Source: Mytilus californianus
Lineage: Eukaryota
DNA: 64,000 bases
NCBI RefSeq assembly: GCF_021869535.1
Contig: NW_026262581.1
Location: 121,830,001-121,894,000, forward strand
Reading direction: 5' to 3'
The notes below the pieces were generated by a model that made no database searches, was not told the DNA's origin, and was given only the letters and a program-made list of their open reading frames with translations. A program made the translations under genes and the position numbers. This document shows, one piece after another, positions 7,280 through 49,467 of this stretch; position 1 is the stretch's first letter; each line of letters begins with the position of its first letter.

Positions 7280-9278
7280 GTAAACACATTGTTGTCGTAA
7301 ATCTTTATATAACTTTTTTTTCTGTCTGTGTTTTTGTAGACTAGGCAAGCACAACAATGTTAGAGAAGATTTTTTTTTCTTCAGAAAGGGACTCATGTTT
7401 TTTTTTAAATATAGCATACTTCACAAACTACAATAAGGACTATTTTTGACAAGAAAGATAGCAAAGTAATATTTTCCTGTAAAAGCATTGAGGCAATCTG
7501 TACATTTGTTTGAGGTTATTCTTTAAGGGGAAAATGTTTTTACTTACAAAAGCACAATTAGCAAGAAACAACAGATGTATTTCTCTTCTTATTCTAATCC
7601 CATCGATGCAATTTGTACTAAATATATAAGACGAGCCTTCACCTTGTAAATACAACCAGAACGACCGTTAAAAGGGGGGTTTGAGTGGAAACCTTTATCT
7701 TTGTAGCAAAATTTTTCTACCTTATAAATTATGAAAGACTCGTACTCTAAAGACTAAATGGCAAAATTCTAAAAAGATCATAGTCGGAATGCGTGTTGAT
7801 AATACACCTGTATATGCTGATTGTTATTATTTCCTGCACCTTATATATATATGTGTATATATATAGACTAGCTTGCACACTGAGATAGATAGTTTGCACA
7901 TTATTTTGTATGTTCTTTAGACACGTTTTGGAAAACACTCATAAATTTTAAACCTATTTGCATGCTGAATTATTTTGTCTTTCAGACGAAACGTTTCTCC
8001 TTTACTGAGTGAAGAATTCCAATGCCGATGAAAAAGACAGATTTCAGGTGCGATACATTGGTGTGACCTGTGCTGCATATAAAATCCACAATCTACCCAC
8101 CATCATCAACTTTCGCTTTAATTAGCTTTTACCTAGCTTTTGGTCCTATTTAGTTCGTTCCATGTTTTATGTTCTTTGTTTTATCTTCCTTTTTCACTCT
8201 GATGGTTTAATGTTTTTTTTTTAATATTTATTTTAACTTCAATTTAATATAGCATATATTATGACTTGTTTGCAAGTTACAAGTGTTTTTTATACGTTTT
8301 TATAAATTTAGTTTAAATATACTAGCTTACAACTTTAATTTATTCCAAATATTTATGGTATATAGTTAGAAAGATTTAGAATATGATAAATTAGTTTCTC
8401 ATTTTATCCATAATAAAGAAACGTAATACTTTTCTAGAAATACAGCAACAACATAAAGAAACTAATGTTAAGTCTGGGATAAGAATTTTATATATAAATA
8501 TATATGAGCTAAGTGTATTTCTGTCCCAATATACAATATGTCAAACATTCGGTGTGTTGACTTTCGCTCCATTTATCCCGCTTATTACTTGGTCACACCA
8601 GTGTTTGCATATCCCTGAAATCCTTGTTTCTTTCTTTGTCTCAGTCTTAGTTCATTATGCTTTTGCTTTTGTTGCAATAATTTTGCACTTACTTTCTATG
8701 CGATGCCATGGATATTAAATAACGTTTGAAAACTTGCTTTCTCTACGATACTATGGATAAAGAATATAGTTCGCAGGCTTACTTTAGATGCGATATTATC
8801 AATTTCTTCCTGTTTAAAAGAAGTATTAACAGATTGATGACGTCAATTTACCAAACGTGAGTTGGTCTCCACTTTGTTTAAGATTTGTATTGCTTGTGGT
8901 TTCTCTGAAAAGTTTGTATAGGAAAAAAAACTCAGTTTTATTGTTGATGCTTTAAACGTGAAATATTTAGAAATGAAAAAAATTGTAGCAAAGGCATTCA
9001 TTTGGTACATTCGAATACTGACTATTATGGACTTAGGAATATTAGTAAAATCTTCATAAACATCTCCAAAGACATTATATACACTGTGTTAAGAAAACAC
9101 ACACAAAGAACATTAACTGTTACAAAATTTGCCGAAAGAAGAGAGGTTAATATAACACAATCGATATGAATTCAAATGTTCGAATTTGCTATAAAATTAA
9201 TTTTTAATGTAAACTGCATTAGATGTTTTTGTATTTGGCTATAGTGAGGCTTACTACTCATTTCATTTCCAATTTCAG

Positions 9279-40664: not shown

Positions 40665-40991
40665 ATGGGACCTGCAAATGTAAGAATTAACCCTGTTGGT
40701 GGAGCTGTATTTATAGCTCTTGGTGTATGTGCAGCTTTGTACATGTTTGGTCTTCCCGACTGGTTCCATAGAGAACCCAGAGTTAGCATGAAAGAACTTT
40801 TATCAGTGTGTATACAGCTTGCACAAGAAGGGGGCAAACGAGTAAAAGATGTAAGACTAGCAAGTAATGAACTCGCGGAAAATCTGAAAGGAAAAACTGA
40901 CGAAGGTGTCAAAGATGTTAAGACAGAAGGAGATACACAGTCTCACAGGGCTATTGTATATGGATTGGCAAAAGCATTCCCTGGTCTGAAG
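40665..40991 (+). CDS. BPNT2: BPNT2/IMPAD1 exon 1
   Basis: [10 protein letters not shown]...KAFPGLK|gtacat. Confidence 0.93.
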
Positions 40992-43900
40992 GTACATGTT
41001 ATGTAAGATCTAATGCAAGTAATTGTATAATCTATTATCTAGTCATTTAGTATTGGGTTCAGTGTTTTGTATCTACAATGGCAGTATTCTTCACAGGCCC
41101 TTAAAGCACCACAGATTTGGGGTATATAATTTCGGAGCATGGTCTTATCAGTGAGTGATTCTAGATATCTGGCCTGTGGTGCTATACATGTTATATCCGT
41201 CTAAAAATCATAAAATTTTATCCAACTTGATTGATGTTATATATACTTACTTACTTATAGTTACTTATAGTTGATTTCCAGTACAGGACCCCTCAAGGTT
41301 CCTCTTCACCAGACTCATAATTTAATGTTTTTCTATTACTGTTTTGTCCGTGACTTCCGGATATTTCTGCTCTGTAGTCATTATAGTATATCTCTTCGTC
41401 TGACCAAAATTTGTCTAATCGGTTTTTAAATGCATTTATTGATGGTGACTTTGTTATTTTATCTGGTAATTTGTTCCAGGTTTTAGCAATTCTAACAGAG
41501 AAAGAGTGTTTACGGATATTTGTTTTGAATCTTTGATGAATGACTTTATTACTGTTGGTCCTGCTACTGAATCTTTGTTGAGAATCATCTGCCGTTCTTA
41601 AAAATGAGCTTACTTCTTTGTCGTAGTATCCATTCATTGTTTTGAAAGTTTCAATCATATCCCCTCTTATTCTCCTATACGATAATGTTGGTAAGCCTAG
41701 TTTTTTAAGTCGCTCTGGGTAGCTCATGTCTTTGAGACCTGGTAATTGTTTTGTTACCCTTCTTTGGACACCTTCTATTTTGTCGATATCTTTTTTCCTG
41801 TATGGGGACCAGACTGAGCTGGCATAATCTAGGTGGGTTCTAACCATGGTTTTGTACAATGGCATGAATGTCTCAATTCCCAAGTACTTAAATGTTCTTC
41901 TAAGAACTGCAAATATAGAGTTGGCCTTGTTCACTTTTTCACTTATGTGATTTTCAAAGGTGAGTTCTGAGTCAATAAGGACTCCTATATCTTTTTCCTC
42001 TGTAACTTGTGCTATTGGATGGTTTAGAAGACTATAATTTGATGGTTGGTCAGTGCTATTAGATTTCTTACATATTTTCATATATTTACATTTTTCCGGG
42101 TGAAATTTGAGTAGCCATTTGTCACTCCAGGATTCCATCTTGTTAAGGTCTTCTTGTAGAATTTGTCTGTCTTTCTGGGTTTTTATTATTCTAAAGATCT
42201 TGGTATCATCCGCAAATAGGTATGCATCAGAATCCACTTGGTCTGGAAGATCATTTATATATAGAACAAATAGTAATGGTCCTAGTACAAATGTAGTACT
42301 GATCCTTGGGGTATCCCAGATGTAACGTTAGCCCAGTCTGATTCTTCACCATTCACTATGACCTTTTGTTTCCTATCTTTTAAGAAGCTTGTTATCCACC
42401 CTACTATATCTTCACTGACACCTAGATTTTTGATTTTGGCTATTAATCTTTTATGAGGTACCTTATCAAAGGCCTTCATAAAATCAGTATATATAGAGTC
42501 TATGTCTAAACCTTGATCTAATGCCTCTGTCCACTTATCAATCACTTCTAATAATTGAAGACCAGTTGACCTCCCTGCAATAAATCCGTATTGCTTTTTA
42601 GAGAATAAGTTGTTCTTTTTCATATGCTCTATAATAAATTCACGCAATATCTTCTCCATTATTTTGCATACTACAGATGTCAAACTGACTGGTCTATAAT
42701 TTTTGGCTAGTGACTTATTACCCTTTTTAAATATAGCACTTATCATAGCATTTTTCCAATCGTTAGGTACTGTCTTACTTTCAAGTGATTGATTATATAT
42801 TATACATAAAGGATTTGCCAATGATTCAGCAATCTCTTTTAGCAGCCTAGGGTGTAGTTTGTCCATACCTGGAGATTTATCTATTTTCAATGCATTTAAG
42901 TGTTTCAGCACTACTTCTTCCTTTATTTTCTGATTTGACATTACATTAGTTACTAATACCGGCGTTGGTGATGGCACTACTCCGTCAGGTTCCTTGGTGA
43001 ATACGCTGGAAAAGTATTCTACTAGTAATTTGGCCTTCTTGCTATTATCCTCCGTTTTATCTGATTTTGTGTCTTCTGGATCCAGGTGTAAATCCCCAAT
43101 TCCTTCTTTGGTTTTAGTTTTTGACTTGATATAACTCCAGATAGCTTTTGGGTTTTCTTTAGCTTTTTCAGACAGATTTTTCTCATATTCCCTCTTCAAC
43201 TTATTTACTCTACTTTTTACTTGATTCCTTATCTTATTGTATTCTTTCCTCACATCTGGGTCGTTATTATGCGTTATCTTTTTTGAGAGGATGTTTTTCC
43301 TTTTAATTTTAACTATGGTGTTTTTATCCATTGGAAAATTGTTTTTCCCTCTCCCGATTTGTTTCCTTTCTTTTGTTGGTATATATTTTTTGTCCATATC
43401 TTGAATTATACTTAAAACTGATCTCCAATTTTCGTTTATATCATTTTCTTTCTGTAGTAATTCTGACCATTTAATGTTATCTAGTTCTTCTTTTATTTTT
43501 ATGTAGTTTCCTCTATTAAATAATTTAATTATTTTTGGTTTACTTTTAATATTTGTATAGCAACTAAAGTCAAATTTCATAGTGCAGTGATCGCTTTTTC
43601 CCAGTGGACTTTGGTATTCTAAATTTGAGATCATATTTTCCTCATTTGTTAAAATCAGGTCTAGGGTATGGGGTGTATTTGTACCCCTCCATCGTGTTGG
43701 TCTTGTAACATGTTGAAATAAGAAGTTTTCTTGTAGATTCTCTAAAAATTTGTATTCATTACTTTCTGTACTTTCACCTGGTGAATTCCAACTGTCCCAG
43801 TTTATTTCAGGAAAATTATAATCTTCCATTAATAGGATATGTGAGTAGCCTTTACTACAAGCTTCAGTGGTAAGCGTATTTAATTGTTTAGTGTATTCCT

Positions 43901-46900
43901 GTGATCTGTTTGATGGTGTTCTGTATATTAGTCCTAATAATAGCTGGTCTGACTGGTTTAAATTAATCTTAATAAATAAGTTTTCTTGGAATTCTGTATT
44001 CATTTGGACCTGTGATGCGTCCAGTTGTTTATCTATGTACAATAAAAGACCTCTGCCTGTGTCAACGTCTAGGTTTTTACCAAACATGTTGTAATCGGAT
44101 ACATCGGCTAAAGAATATTCTGAAATTCCTGGTTTGTACCGATTATTTTTAGGTTTAACCTCTGTAATACCAATTATTTTTGGTTTATCGTCTCTTGTTC
44201 TTACTGTTAATTCAGGCAGCTTGTTGAATAACTGATCTGCATTTGTGTATATACAGCTTAATTTGGGTAAAACTGTAAAATTATCTGTTTTTACATTTTT
44301 AAAAACCTTTTTACCATTAAAATTATTTACATTCTCTTTTCCTCTTTTATCTTTTAGGAGTCTAGCTTCCTTAATTTGACAACCTTCCTTGCCCAAGGTG
44401 GGCCCCTTACTTTGAAATGGTAGTCCCCCGAAATCTCTTCTTCGGTTTGTCTTCTCGCTTGATCCCACAATCTTTTCTCTTGCTCTCTTTCTGCTTGGGT
44501 TAGGTCGTTACTGACTCCCACTTTTTCGTATTTTGGGTTTGTTTTTATATAATGGATGTTTCTAAATAGGGTGATCTTAGGTTCTGCACTAGGTAATTTT
44601 ACTAGGATTGGTCTATTTAGCTTTTCTTTGTTAAATTTCCCAAGTCTTTTAACCATTTTCAAATTTTCCTTATCCAGTTTTATTTTGCAGTCTGTAAAGA
44701 GCTCGTTTAGTTTTTCTTTGTCAGTATTATCTCTTACTTCTTTGCTCTCGTCATCTATTTCAGGGATCCCAAAGACGATCAGGTTATTTTCTCTTGCCTT
44801 TCTCTCATTAATTTCTTCAAGAACATTTGTTACAGTCTCCTTTCTTGTTATAGGATTGGCTGCTATATCTATCTCATTGTTTGTGGAATCGCTATCTCCT
44901 TTATTCTCGGGCTTTTGTATCTTGCTTATTTCTTCTGTTATTATGGCTTTAACTTTTTCCTCATTACAACTTTCTTCTATGATTGGTGCCTCTATTTTGC
45001 CAACTTCCTCTTGTACCATCAATTTTACCATATCGTCATTGCAGTTTTTTATTTCCTCTCTAACAATCTCCTTGACTTTATCCTCGTCACATTTATTTTC
45101 AACTGTTTTTTCAAGTAATGTAATTCTTTCCTCATAACTCTCCATTATCTGTTTGCACCTTCTTTCTATTTCAATATCGGTGACTGCATGTTGTTCCATG
45201 ACTATTCTGCATTTCCCACAAAACCACATTGCATCTGTTTTACATAGCATGCTGTATTCCGCTTTTGTTTTCTTTAGACCGGTTATGCAGAAATGTTCCT
45301 TACACCTTTGGCATTCCATAAGTTGAGCCTCTGGCTCCCTGAAGATTTTGGTACATTTTGCGCATGTCCACGCTTCATCCTCATCTTGACTTGTTTTTTT
45401 GTGACGATTTGGGGCCTGTGGTACTGTTTTTTCTGGTTGACGCCATACTTCTTACTTAATAAAAATAGGGCTTCCCTATTTTTTTTTTTTTTTTTATTAT
45501 TATTATTTTTTTTTTTTTTTTTTTTTTTACCTGGCTGAGGAATTGTATAAGGCTTCCTTACACCAACTTATTTTGTAGTACTTTATTTTATTCTACTTTT
45601 ATTTAAAGGACAAGGCTACCCTATCCTTGTCTAAAGTTCGATTTCAAATGAAGCTAGACTATCCTAATTTTGACAGGGCTTCCCTATCACGTGTTTAATT
45701 TATTTTGGGACAAGGCTTCCCCATCCGTTTGACATAAACTGCACTCTCAAATGATAGAAATAGGGCTTCCCTGTTTCCTCAATAACTATCTCTCTTTACT
45801 TATTTTTCAGGACAAGGATTCCTTATCCTCCTAAAATTTTTTAGCACTGACCTTTTTAATAAAAACAAGGCTTCCTTTGTTTTTATTTCTCCTTGTTGTA
45901 TATATTCCTTTCCCTTACTCAGAAGACAAGGCTTCCTTGTTTTCTGTTCACGTTTTAAATAAAACTAGGCTTACCTCTACGTAATAGGGCTTCCCTATTA
46001 CTTTAAAAATTTTTTCAATTTTTTTTTTTTTTAAAATTATTATTTCTCTGTTAGAATATGCTTTTTTGCTTTAAATTTGAAGACAAGGCTTCCTTGTCTA
46101 TGGAACTGAAGTACCTATCTATAGAGTCAATATTTCACTTCGTTATGTACAGAACAGGGCTTCCCTATTCTGTCTTGCCTCCCCAATAATTTACTATGCC
46201 CAGACAAGGCTTCCCTATCTGGGTTTATTATATATATATATATAATAATAACAGTTCCCTTTTACTTTATGCAACTGAAACAGGGCTTCCCTATTTCAGT
46301 GACTCCTCCTTAACAGGTTTCAGACACTTCTAGGGATAGCTCCACCATTTTGTAAACCCATAGTTTAGCTAGCGTTCTATTTGGGTGGATGCCGTCTGAC
46401 AATAACTTATAGTTTTTCCTGTACCTCACCCTGGTTTTGTTTTTGGGTTTGTTCGATATTATTTGGTCTTGTGAAAATCTGGGTGCTCTATACTTCTTAT
46501 TAAGTAATTTTAATTGACTATTATAGTAGTCTACTTGGTAGCACAGTTCTTTATCCAAGCTACTCGCTTGTGTTACTGATCTAAACCCTTTAGACTTATC
46601 AATTACTAATGCCGGGTAATGCCTCTTGTTTCTTTCCTTTTTTGTTACAATTCTGGTACCACTATACTTTTTCACTACTAAGGAGTAGTTTGATGGTTTT
46701 TTCTGATTGTTGTTTTGTTCTAATATGTCTTTATTTTTCTTCCCTTCTCTGATTGTTTTATTAAATGTGGAGATTGAATAATATGGGCATTCAAGAAAGA
46801 TTATAGTGACATATTTGAATCTTGTAAGTATTTTGTCTCTTAGTTCTCTATAGCCTGTTAGAATTGACTCTATATTTTGATAGGGGTAAATTCTTAGGTA

Positions 46901-49467
46901 TGTGTATTTTCCCTTTGTGGTAATCTCACAAGTTCCAAACCAGATTAGAATAATTGGGTCTTTTTGTTTCAGTTCTTCTAGTTTTGCAAAGAGGTTTTTT
47001 AAGTGCTCATCAGTGGTGGCTGTAGTTCCGCTCTTGGCTATTATGTGGAACTTGTCACGGACGCTGTCTGGGACCACTTTATCTACACTAAACCCCTTGC
47101 TGTCCGTGAAAAGCACGGTTTCTCTTGAAAGGCCCTGCCTTTTAAATAGGTTATAAACCCTTTTGTATTCTTTTATTATCTTGTTCACTGACATGAATTT
47201 CTATTGCTTATGCAATGTCAAAATTCGGATATACAAAATTTCAATTTCAAAATAAAAAAAAAAAAAAATCCAATATGGCGGCAACAGGCCTAGTGTCAAT
47301 GCACAATTTTCAAAGAGGATTTTTCACTATTCGTCAGTAATTAATCCACATTTACATTTATATACAGTTATTTATGGCTTATTTACTGAAAATATTTGAC
47401 TTATTTGACAACTGACTCACAAAAACACACAGAAAACTTATCTTTTTTTGACTTTTTGCAGGAGCAGAAAAATCTTGACCATGCCGACCGGAACCAAAGT
47501 TGGTTTCCATTCTCTATATATAAACTTCTCTAATATATGTTTTTATTATAATTATTCTTGATATAACTTCTAATAAAATCGTAATCAACATATTAAATGC
47601 CATCAGATATACTACATAGTCATCCCTTCTCATTAAAGGTGATAAAATGATTTTAATATAAATATTTTACATTGAAAAATAATATATTTAATATGAAATA
47701 TTAATATAAATGTTTAAGATATTAAAAACAATATTTGAATAAATGTTTTCACCAATGAATATTATATTTGAATATGTGTCGGAAGCACGATTTTTGATCC
47801 TCCACCTTTGCTGTTGGTCATAAAATTCATTAATAATACATATAATTTATATCCCTTTTAATTTTTCATGCCCCCTCTGTAGCAGAGGGGGCATTAAGTT
47901 TTACCCTTGTCCGTCCGTACGTCCCAAAGTTGGTTTCCATTCTCTAACTTAAGTTTGCCTCAACCAAAGGTTATGAAACTAATACAAAATGCTTATTACC
48001 ACAAAACACAGATCAAGTTTGAAGTTTGGTGGCGTCACTTTAATCGTTCTAGAGTTATGCCCCTTTATAAATGGAAAAATTGCTGAATTTTTCATTTCCG
48101 TTCTCTCACTTAAGTTTGCCTCTACCAAATGTTATGAATCTTATACACAATGCTTATTACTACAAAACAGAAATTGATTTTGAAATTTTGTAGGCATCAC
48201 TTTTACCATTCTAGAGTTATGCCCCTTTACAAATGGAAAAATTGCTGAATTTTTCACTTCGGTCTCTCACTTAAGTTTACTTAAGTTTTGCTTAAGAAAC
48301 TTATACAAATAGATATAAGAAGATGTGGTATGAGTGCCAATGAGACAATTCTCCATCCAAGTCAAAATTTATAAAAGTAAACCATTATAGGTCAAAGTAC
48401 AGTCTTCAACACGGAGCCTTGGCTCACAACGAACAGTAAGCTATAAAGGGCCCCAAAAATTACTAGTGTAAAACCTCTCAAACGGGAAAACCAACGGTCT
48501 AATCTATATAAAAAACGAGAAACACTTATGAACCACATCAACAAACGACAACTACTGAACATCAGATTCCTGACTTAGGACAGGTGCAAACAAATGCAGC
48601 GGGTTTAAACGGTTTAAAGGTACCAAACCTTCACCCTATTAAGTCTGAAACAATATTGTAACGTCACAACATAGAAAGACACACTATAAAATATCAACTG
48701 AAATAGCTTAACTCAATCAAAGGACATATTAACACCAGTGAACATACACTGAACAAATAAATATATAAATGCTTATTACCACAAAACTCAGATCAAGCAC
48801 AAATTTAGGTAGCGTGACTTTTACTGTTCTTGAGTTATGTCCCTTTATAACGTTATATGCAAGGGTTGGCATCATTTGTGTCCCATGGACACATTCCCCA
48901 TTTATTTTGTCATGGTCTGTATCTTAGATACTATAAGCAATATGTCAATTATGTTTGGTGTGTGGAATGGTTGTAAGATGTACATGTCTGACTGGCAGGT
49001 TTTATCTGACCTTGACATAATTTCCATGGTTCATGGGTTTTGCTCATTGTTGAAGGCTGTACGGTGACCCATGGTTTTTATACGCCCATTTACGGGACAT
49101 ATTATGGTATACTGTTGTCCGTCTATCGTCAACATGTCGGACAATAACTCAAAAACGCTTTAACCAATTTGCATGAAACTTTGGTGAATTGTTTATATCT
49201 ACATGTATTATAATAACATTCCTTTAGTTTTTTTAAATTTCTGATATGACATTGAGTAGTTATGGAACTATATTCTTTGAAAAAGAGACGGGCGTATCAT
49301 GCGCTCATGGCACAGCTCTTTATTAACTTCTATGTCATTTGGTCTCTGGTGGAGAGTTGTCTCGTTTGCATTCATACCTCATCTTCTTATTTTTACATTC
49401 ATTGGACAATGCTTAGTTTTTATACGACCGCAAAAATTAAAAATTTTTTGGTCGTATATTGGTATGA

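Follow-up and report, generated by a model that had tools for sequence, protein, structure and literature searches.

The locus considered here raises the question whether a LINE (long interspersed nuclear element) can carry a free-standing esterase gene ahead of the two open reading frames (ORFs) that such elements normally have. It lies in a stretch of 64,000 nucleotides (nt) of the Mytilus californianus genome (assembly GCF_021869535.1, contig NW_026262581.1, positions 121,830,001 to 121,894,000), hereafter called the window, in which positions are counted from the first letter. A preliminary description of this DNA had proposed an apparently tricistronic CR1-type LINE, with a separate SGNH esterase ORF upstream of ORF1 and of an ORF2 for endonuclease and reverse transcriptase (EN-RT). 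In our reading, the window contains a dead copy of a Mytilus LINE of the CR1/L2 group, whose functional form probably has three cistrons on one RNA. Such an RNA would begin with a 5' untranslated region (UTR) holding the presumed promoter and continue with the gene of a basic, stand-alone esterase-like protein of SGNH fold. Next would come a spacer that is poor in AUG and full of hairpins, then an RNA-binding ORF1 protein (ORF1p) that combines PHD finger, coiled coil and L1-like RRM and C-terminal domain (CTD), and last the EN-RT in the -1 frame.

Copies in two other species, compared with the window by blastn, in M. coruscus (L005:3525-10060) and M. edulis (L006, 5' end at 8687), establish by their collinearity that the esterase, the hairpin array, ORF1 and ORF2 move as a single piece. 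The M. coruscus copy aligns unbroken and at full length from window position 47493 to 41238 (93-96% identity); the M. edulis copy (85% identity) is continuous from 47493 past esterase, hairpins and ORF1 as far as 42600 within ORF2, where its collinear part ends. As had been supposed, no repeat boundary separates the ORFs. At the protein level the esterase is 95% identical to that of M. coruscus and 87% identical to that of M. edulis. The flanks of the three copies are unrelated, and the copies are therefore independent insertions. All three start, upstream of the esterase ORF, with the same bases (TTCCGGTCGGCATGG); since the other two carry seven extra bases (ACGTGAC) before this point, a few bases may be absent from the 5' end of the window copy. 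The 3' terminus has no poly(A): a stem-loop spans the ORF2 stop codon and is followed by a short-repeat tail that stops near 41238-41244. This stem-loop, which is unlike the spacer hairpins, is also found with a G-U to G-C change in L005 and in L001, a related contig described below. The element had earlier been placed at 41244-47495, which is within a few bases of the homology limits (Table 1). A target-site duplication (TSD) was sought around the window copy and no clear one was found, just TATATA(TA). The M. edulis copy is an inversion copy, in which the equivalent of window 42572-41620 is inverted and lies directly against the 5' end, and the breakpoints (42600/42572) are adjacent in element coordinates. 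The inverted 3' kilobase occupies L006:7731-8672, as against L006:8687-13617 for the other part, and the 3' piece is truncated at window 41620. An inversion of this kind, with its truncated 3' piece, fits a twin-priming-type event on one RNA holding both esterase and ORF2, and is suggestive only.

Table 1. Features of the LINE copy in window coordinates (lengths of proteins in amino acids, aa; L001, L005 and L006 as in the text)
Feature	Position	Strand	Basis
Whole LINE copy, 6.26 kb, three cistrons	41238-47493	-	blastn limits common to L005 and L006
5' UTR and presumed internal promoter, beginning TTCCGGTCGG	47195-47493	-	first bases same in three copies
Cistron 1, intact: stand-alone esterase-like protein of SGNH fold, 294 aa, pI 9.9	46310-47194	-	ORF, AlphaFold (AF2) model and homologues
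Hairpin array: 14 short units with apex (U)AGGG-AAG-CCCU(G/A); lower stems vary	45458-46301	-	motif count and covariation
Cistron 2, ORF1: PHD finger, coiled coil, L1-like RRM and CTD	44354-45446	-	ORF and L001 homologue
Cistron 3, ORF2: APE endonuclease and reverse transcriptase	41293-44468	-	Exo_endo_phos_2 1.7e-14, RVT_1 9e-18 (Pfam)
3' end: stem-loop over ORF2 stop (~41277-41313), then tail (ACTATAAGTA)x2 (AGTA)n	41238-41313	-	sequence and L001/L005 comparison

The first cistron is an intact ORF that was found where it had been reported, co-oriented with ORF1 and ORF2. The reported spacing holds as well, except that 864 nt, not 863, separate the esterase stop from the ORF1 ATG. A Pfam search of the esterase ORF yielded no match, nor did one of the window ORF1, which made structure prediction necessary. 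The AlphaFold model of the esterase (pLDDT 79, pTM 0.76) has just a 15-residue helix before a core with the flavodoxin-like SGNH fold: the top 50 Foldseek matches are mostly GDSL/SGNH hydrolases and PAF acetylhydrolase, and VIA-align superimposes the model on SGNH enzymes with Z 14-16 over ~180 residues (rmsd 3 Å). The SGNH blocks noticed in the sequence are real and are kept in 17 homologues aligned over their whole length, namely S32 in DSKG, G56, G87-T-C89-E90 and D267-G-I-H270. S32, G56 and D267 occur in all of these sequences, and H270 in at least 90% of them. The Cys and Glu of block III are nearly invariant, and Cys stands in place of the expected oxyanion-hole Asn (G-x-N-D); the assignment of Cys to the Asn position follows from block order and from the topology of the predicted model. 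Because of this replacement, catalytic activity is uncertain. The protein is basic and contains merely 1-2 Met.

Comparison of copies, proposed earlier as a check, establishes at the codon level that the esterase ORF is under purifying selection. The dN/dS ratio of the window against L005 is 0.10, against L006 0.08 and against L001 0.17-0.21 (overall 0.08-0.21), with the ratio being reliable for the close pairs only because dS between window and L001 is saturated (about 2 or more). A profile search of 1.84 billion cluster representatives detects 977 esterase clusters with E no higher than 1e-3, of which 471 reach 1e-10 or lower. Most members have 235-250 aa (typically ~240 aa) and cover the whole profile, hence they are stand-alone proteins. 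A scan of metagenomes with the esterase alignment gives one locus only (L007). Within the element, the esterase would add a membrane or lipid function alongside RNA packaging by ORF1p, without replacing it.

The gene order recurs in relatives of the element. L001, a 5.8-kb contig, has all three ORFs open, encoding an esterase of 266 aa, an ORF1 of 324 aa and an ORF2 of 1014 aa. The P0021 contig, whose esterase is 28% identical, encodes proteins of 247 aa and 271 aa and an EN-RT of 1265 aa; L002 encodes 246 aa, 777 aa and an EN-RT of at least 1140 aa, and L007 and L003 are decayed copies of the L002 type. L004 (esterase 329 aa, 1.5-kb spacer) and L010 (esterase 294 aa, 1.3-kb spacer) both continue with a PHD-ORF1. 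An ORF1-like ORF is next after the esterase in every relative with enough downstream sequence (two short contigs of <1.6 kb cover merely the first 180-250 nt after the esterase), and the EN-RT is third in the relatives with intact ORFs that can be read far enough, that is, L001, L002 and the P0021 contig. The intervening spacers range from 84 to ~1500 nt. As seen in these contigs, the order esterase, ORF1, ORF2 is conserved across deep divergence (esterase identity down to 28%) and on two LINE backbones. The ORF2s of L002 and L001 are 25% identical in the reverse transcriptase (RT), the former matching human L1 ORF2p among PDB sequences (4e-17) and the latter R2 proteins only, not L1 ORF2p; the ORF1s of L002 and L001 are unrelated. 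The long ORF1s of the second backbone (L002:1241-3574, L003:9353-10730, L007:1100-2775) have the N-terminal motif ...Y-T-x-N-x-Y-x-T-T-S-K-x-L-V-N-G-K in common and no Pfam match. Recent swapping of the esterase between backbones is not supported, as the esterase tree is congruent with backbone type; an old association is therefore more likely.

The esterase is thus a separate first cistron of the same retrotransposon, given the 5' end common to three Mytilus copies, the intact L001 with its three ORFs and the order kept in relatives. LINEs normally have at most two ORFs, and esterase and PHD domains are both known within ORF1 proteins (PMC4120745), so that the esterase ORF might instead be a neighbouring independent element or host gene, or the split piece of a former PHD-esterase fusion ORF1. 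We give this almost no credence: the element boundaries are common to three species, separate cistrons with spacers are kept in lineages down to 28% identity, the ~980 clusters consist of stand-alone proteins, and the ORF is under purifying selection. Two outcomes had been named earlier as refuting the proposal: esterase copies found mostly without the LINE, and full-length LINE copies consistently beginning downstream of 46300. The ten readable contexts show neither.

The two downstream cistrons are recognizable and damaged. Window ORF1 is open at 44354-45319 and extends upstream to the ATG at 45446. Its L001 homologue, 49% identical to it and 99% identical to M. galloprovincialis proteins, has a PHD match slightly below the Pfam cut-off of 24 (23.7 bits, E 5e-5). 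The AlphaFold model of L001 ORF1 (32 homologues, pLDDT 83) consists of a zinc finger, a long helix (residues 69-109) and an alpha/beta C-terminal half; Foldseek relates it to the human L1 ORF1p trimer (2yko/2ykp, E 1e-5, ~208 columns), to Pygo/MLL PHD fingers and to RRMs. On the basis of this PHD match and the L1-like RRM-CTD structural match, the assignment of PHD, coiled coil and RRM to ORF1 stands. The window ORF1 has two lesions, a run of A7 at 45394-45400 where in-frame reading needs A6 (L005 has A5), and a change from Cys to Gly at a zinc ligand of the zinc finger. In the M. coruscus copy, a 23-bp unit within ORF1 is expanded to ~7 tandem copies (L005:5925-6068), disrupting the ORF. Pfam finds Exo_endo_phos_2 followed by RVT_1 in ORF2 and no RNase H. 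In the window, ORF2 is in two open pieces (42282-44468 and 41293-42237), the tblastn pieces meet at 42294/42312, and the lesion is an insertion of ~11 nt at ~42283-42293. In both window and L001, ORF2 overlaps ORF1 by ~110 nt and is shifted to the -1 frame against it. Frameshifts in ORF1 and ORF2 make the window copy a dead one. Only the esterase ORF remains intact, and the preliminary description had already remarked that it alone of the three has no visible lesion.

Between the esterase and ORF1 lies the hairpin array that had been noticed earlier, and counts bear it out. Exact RGGAAGCCYT cores number 12 in the window, where 0.13 are expected; they are confined to the minus strand at 45467-46291, and with three variants included the hairpins total 14. 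In 24 hairpins from window and L001, aligned on their loops, pairing holds in 87% of cells (compared to 71% in shuffles and 26-55% when partners are slid), 49 cells show double, compensatory changes (18 in shuffles, and 0 of 500 shuffles reach 49), and 8 of 10 pairs covary. The fold of the spacer has a z-score of -8.4, and the frequent G-U pairs are compatible with the sense strand only. The 13-nt apex is conserved in sequence, not in structure alone. These stem covariations and sense-strand-only G-U pairs rule out that the core is a double-stranded transcription-factor site. Rfam has no match in window 41000-48000.

The position of the hairpin is also conserved. The first hairpin starts 9 nt past the esterase stop in the window and 6 nt past it in L001; in L002, L007, L004 and L010 the stop codon is itself part of the 5' arm, being UGA in L002 and L007 and UAG in L010, where the hairpin is a degenerate copy. 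In most lineages, a hairpin with the GGGAAGCCC apex is thus found 0-10 nt from the esterase stop codon, and this core is retained despite saturated synonymous sites (dS about 2 or more). Copies of the apex (U)AGGG-AAG-CCCU(G/A) number 14 in the window, 11 in L001 (one of them in the 5' UTR), at least 2 in L008, 5 in L003, 1 in L002 and 2 in L007. In the sister esterase clade (L004:1460-2530, L010:1790-2670), the GGGAAGCCC array is replaced by ~24 hairpins with an AAUAA/UUGUU stem, a U-G wobble and covarying outer pairs. An AAUAR/YUGUU stem is common to both hairpin types, which suggests descent from the same hairpin. From the pattern of substitutions, the hairpin is shown to be a selected sense-strand structure at or just after the esterase stop codon. 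Widely varying copy number (1, 2, 5, 11, 14, ~24) and the variant hairpins of L010, which form a regular tandem repeat of ~37 nt, would be expected of a functionless, neutral minisatellite-like expansion of a palindromic unit. The window linkers, however, are not repeated and form no direct-repeat families, stems differ yet remain paired through 49 compensatory cells, lineages whose synonymous divergence is saturated have an identical apex, and the position relative to the stop codon is conserved; neutral expansion is therefore very improbable. The last hairpin is immediately preceded by (AAT)n and long runs of A (window 45480-45535, minus strand), possible sites of premature polyadenylation or slippage.

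How would ORF1 and ORF2 be expressed from such an RNA? The esterase stop is not read through into ORF1: if the esterase frame of L002 is extended, it runs into a stop codon, and this frame is not that of ORF1. The spacers are poor in ATG, with 2 observed against 18.6 expected in the window, 3 against 12 in L001, 8 against 31 in L004 and 9 against 24 in L010; ATG is the rarest of the six permutations of A, T and G in 5 of 6 spacers. Most esterase ORFs have 4-9 ATG per kb (L008 12.7), compared to 32 in ORF1 and 19 in ORF2 of L001. Around the esterase AUG, positions -3 and +4 are both U in window, L005, L006 and L001, and are C and U, respectively, in L002, whereas the context of the ORF1 AUG is strong in window and L002 (purine at -3, G at +4). 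The ~2 kb before the ORF1 start are thus strongly AUG-poor, pointing to scanning-dependent translation. It had been supposed that the downstream ORFs need a dedicated mechanism, a view to which AUG depletion and the stop-proximal hairpin lend some support. We propose, with slightly more doubt than confidence, that ribosomes would reach ORF1 by leaky scanning past the weak-context esterase AUG together with ribosome retention and reinitiation after termination, the stop-proximal hairpin acting as cis element and the strong-context ORF1 AUG being the first good start in ~2 kb. More speculatively, the stop-proximal hairpin and the arrays may constitute a new eukaryotic intercistronic element by which one capped LINE RNA yields three proteins: post-termination ribosomes would be held, or a factor or the esterase recruited, and passed over up to 1.5 kb of AUG-free spacer, with esterase and ORF1p being complementary and not interchangeable. 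We consider this extension rather doubtful.

The hairpins could also be multivalent protein-binding sites for packaging or tethering of the LINE RNA, recognized by the esterase, ORF1p or a host factor, instead of translation elements. An apex conserved in sequence is what specific recognition would need, the hairpin type follows the esterase clade (GGGAAGCCC arrays versus AAUAA/UUGUU arrays in the sister), esterase and hairpin occur together on both backbones although the ORF1s of these are unrelated, one copy sits in the 5' UTR of L001, and the esterase is basic (pI 9.9). Binding of this kind leaves both the closeness of the first hairpin to the stop codon and the avoidance of AUG in the spacer unexplained, and the esterase domain of ZfL2-1 did not bind oligo(A) RNA in an assay with single-stranded RNA only (PMC3905857). 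We hold it possible but on the unlikely side, and both roles could coexist.

A further alternative concerns the transcript itself. ORF1 and ORF2 might be translated from a shorter RNA, made from an internal promoter or by splicing out the esterase, with the esterase being made from full-length or prematurely polyadenylated RNA and the array being the 5' leader of the shorter RNA. AUG depletion is expected of a 5' leader, the spacer is rich in A and contains long runs of it as well as AATAAA-like signals, and bicistronic relatives without esterase exist. The conserved promoter-like sequence, however, lies upstream of the esterase and not in the spacer. The extreme 5' end reads ACTTCCGG (window 47485-47493; also L005 and L006), and a GCCGCCAT(A/T)TTGGATT box, in the window GCCGCCATATTGGATT at ~47267-47282, is found 87-104 nt upstream of the esterase ATG in window, L005 and L006. 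In the form CCGCCAT(N)TTGGATT it occurs 30-201 nt upstream of the esterase ATG in L005, L006, L002 and L010-L012, and is altered in L001. We take ACTTCCGG to resemble an ETS site and the GCCGCCAT(N)TTGGATT box to resemble a YY1 site; both are candidate internal-promoter elements to which these factors may bind. In addition, the three Mytilus copies all begin at the same 5' base, and the esterase ORF is AUG-poor too, which would be needless for a separate transcript. A shorter RNA is on these grounds unlikely.

Several points weigh against the proposal of three cistrons on one RNA and its scanning route. A single transcript and the translation of all three ORFs are presumed. About 5 internal AUGs remain in the esterase ORF, the esterase AUG of L010 is in strong context, the spacer of L003 is not AUG-depleted, and reinitiation after an ORF of ~290 codons is normally inefficient in eukaryotes (PMC3894237). 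The paucity of AUG would equally fit the array as 5' leader of a shorter transcript. With regard to generality, a contig with a 44%-identical ORF1 homologue has no esterase-size ORF upstream, hence two-ORF relatives exist. The oxyanion hole of the esterase is atypical (Cys for Asn) although the Ser/Asp-x-x-His triad and the Gly are present, and catalysis is accordingly in doubt. The esterase family also has no detectable sequence link to the ZfL2-1 esterase: a profile of the 17 members, searched against PDB sequences at E up to 10, retrieved two spurious matches and no esterase chain, 4c1b included; 4c1b is outside the top 50 structural matches of the model, and with regard to the transposon-specific His/Ser pair, Trp, not His, is found 4 residues before the block III position. 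Finally, the earlier label 'CR1-type' holds only at the level of the CR1/L2 group, by virtue of the 3' stem-loop with short-repeat tail and the ORF1 type; from the RT there is indirect evidence, in that the ORF2 of L001 matches R2 and not L1 ORF2p in the PDB.

Among known elements, LINEs with a type IIC ORF1 (PHD and transposase_22-like RRM-CTD), reported for CR1 subgroup 5 and L2 subgroup 6, resemble the mussel family in ORF1 architecture, in the APE-RT ORF2 and in the 3' stem-loop with short-repeat tail (PMC4120745). They are described as two-ORF elements, whereas the mussel family adds the upstream esterase cistron and the hairpin array. The ORF1p of ZfL2-1, a type IV esterase ORF1p as found in CR1, L2 and RTEX (PDB 4c1a/4c1b; PMC3905857), is likewise a basic SGNH-fold product of the first LINE ORF with a triad of Ser and Asp-x-x-His. 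In ZfL2-1, a coiled coil and an arginine-rich motif precede the esterase within one protein, which is the sole ORF product before ORF2, while the mussel esterase is bare except for a short N-terminal helix, is followed by a complete RNA-binding ORF1 and differs from ZfL2-1-type esterases in having Cys for the Asn of block III. Esterase ORF1s have been regarded as a separate architectural class without RNA-binding domains, an alternative to RNA-binding ORF1ps (PMC3905857). In the study by Metcalfe and Casane, type IV esterase ORF1s were confined to vertebrate subgroups of CR1 and L2 (PMC4120745), and a 2026 survey of vertebrate CR1-group elements lists ORF1-less and esterase-ORF1 forms only (PMC13343379). 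Stand-alone SGNH/GDSL accessory genes are also known from other retroelements, namely the GDSL esterase ORF3 of rotifer Vesta long terminal repeat (LTR) retrotransposons and Athena elements (PMC5408684). These belong to another element class and have the esterase ORF downstream of pol, with no hairpin array described; by analogy, the rotifer ORFs and the mussel esterase would fit the idea that retroelements have captured such enzymes repeatedly.

As to expression, the UAAUG coupling of SART1 and the unconventional translation of L1 ORF2 (reviewed in PMC3894237) also concern polycistronic LINE RNAs on which a stop-adjacent structure influences downstream initiation. Initiation at ORF2 of SART1 is affected by a structure that follows the stop-start site, a precedent for the stop-proximal hairpin (PMC3894237). 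Stop and start overlap in SART1, whereas cistrons 1 and 2 of the mussel family are separated by an AUG-poor, hairpin-filled spacer of 84 to ~1500 nt.

ORFs I-III of rice tungro bacilliform virus are translated from a polycistronic RNA by leaky scanning. This reverse-transcribing element likewise has a long AUG-poor stretch and a weak-context first start before later cistrons; AUG depletion in the mussel LINE is strong but incomplete, and the similarity is no more than a lead.

Searches of the published literature, Repbase and Dfam not included, found no three-ORF CR1/L2 LINE with an esterase and no hairpin array between LINE ORFs. Esterase and PHD ORF1 types are already known; the extra stand-alone esterase cistron and the conserved intercistronic hairpin appear to be new for a LINE of the CR1/L2 group. 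The ~980 protein clusters from bivalve genomes and invertebrate-derived assemblies extend LINE esterases to invertebrate CR1/L2-type elements, and the presence of esterase and complete L1-like ORF1p as separate genes indicates that the two functions can be complementary. For the scattered distribution of LINE esterases, either exchange or successive loss and gain has been invoked (PMC3905857, PMC4120745), and a three-cistron family is a plausible intermediate for exchanges between esterase and ORF1. The stop-codon hairpin and the AUG-poor 2-kb leader offer a testable handle on three-cistron expression from one eukaryotic retrotransposon RNA.

Three observations concern the surroundings of the insertion. 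An exact 21-bp direct repeat (GAGAATGGAAACCAACTTTGG) at 47494-47514 and 47924-47944 (minus strand) encloses a 409-bp AT-rich segment just upstream of the LINE 5' end. It was rejected as TSD of the LINE, being outside the element, and may belong to another repeat family or be the TSD of a small insertion. Window 47913-48272 matches a repeat at L005:12237-12615. On the opposite strand, ~230 nt past the LINE 3' end, a 113-aa ORF without Pfam match (40665-41006, plus strand) may be a host exon.

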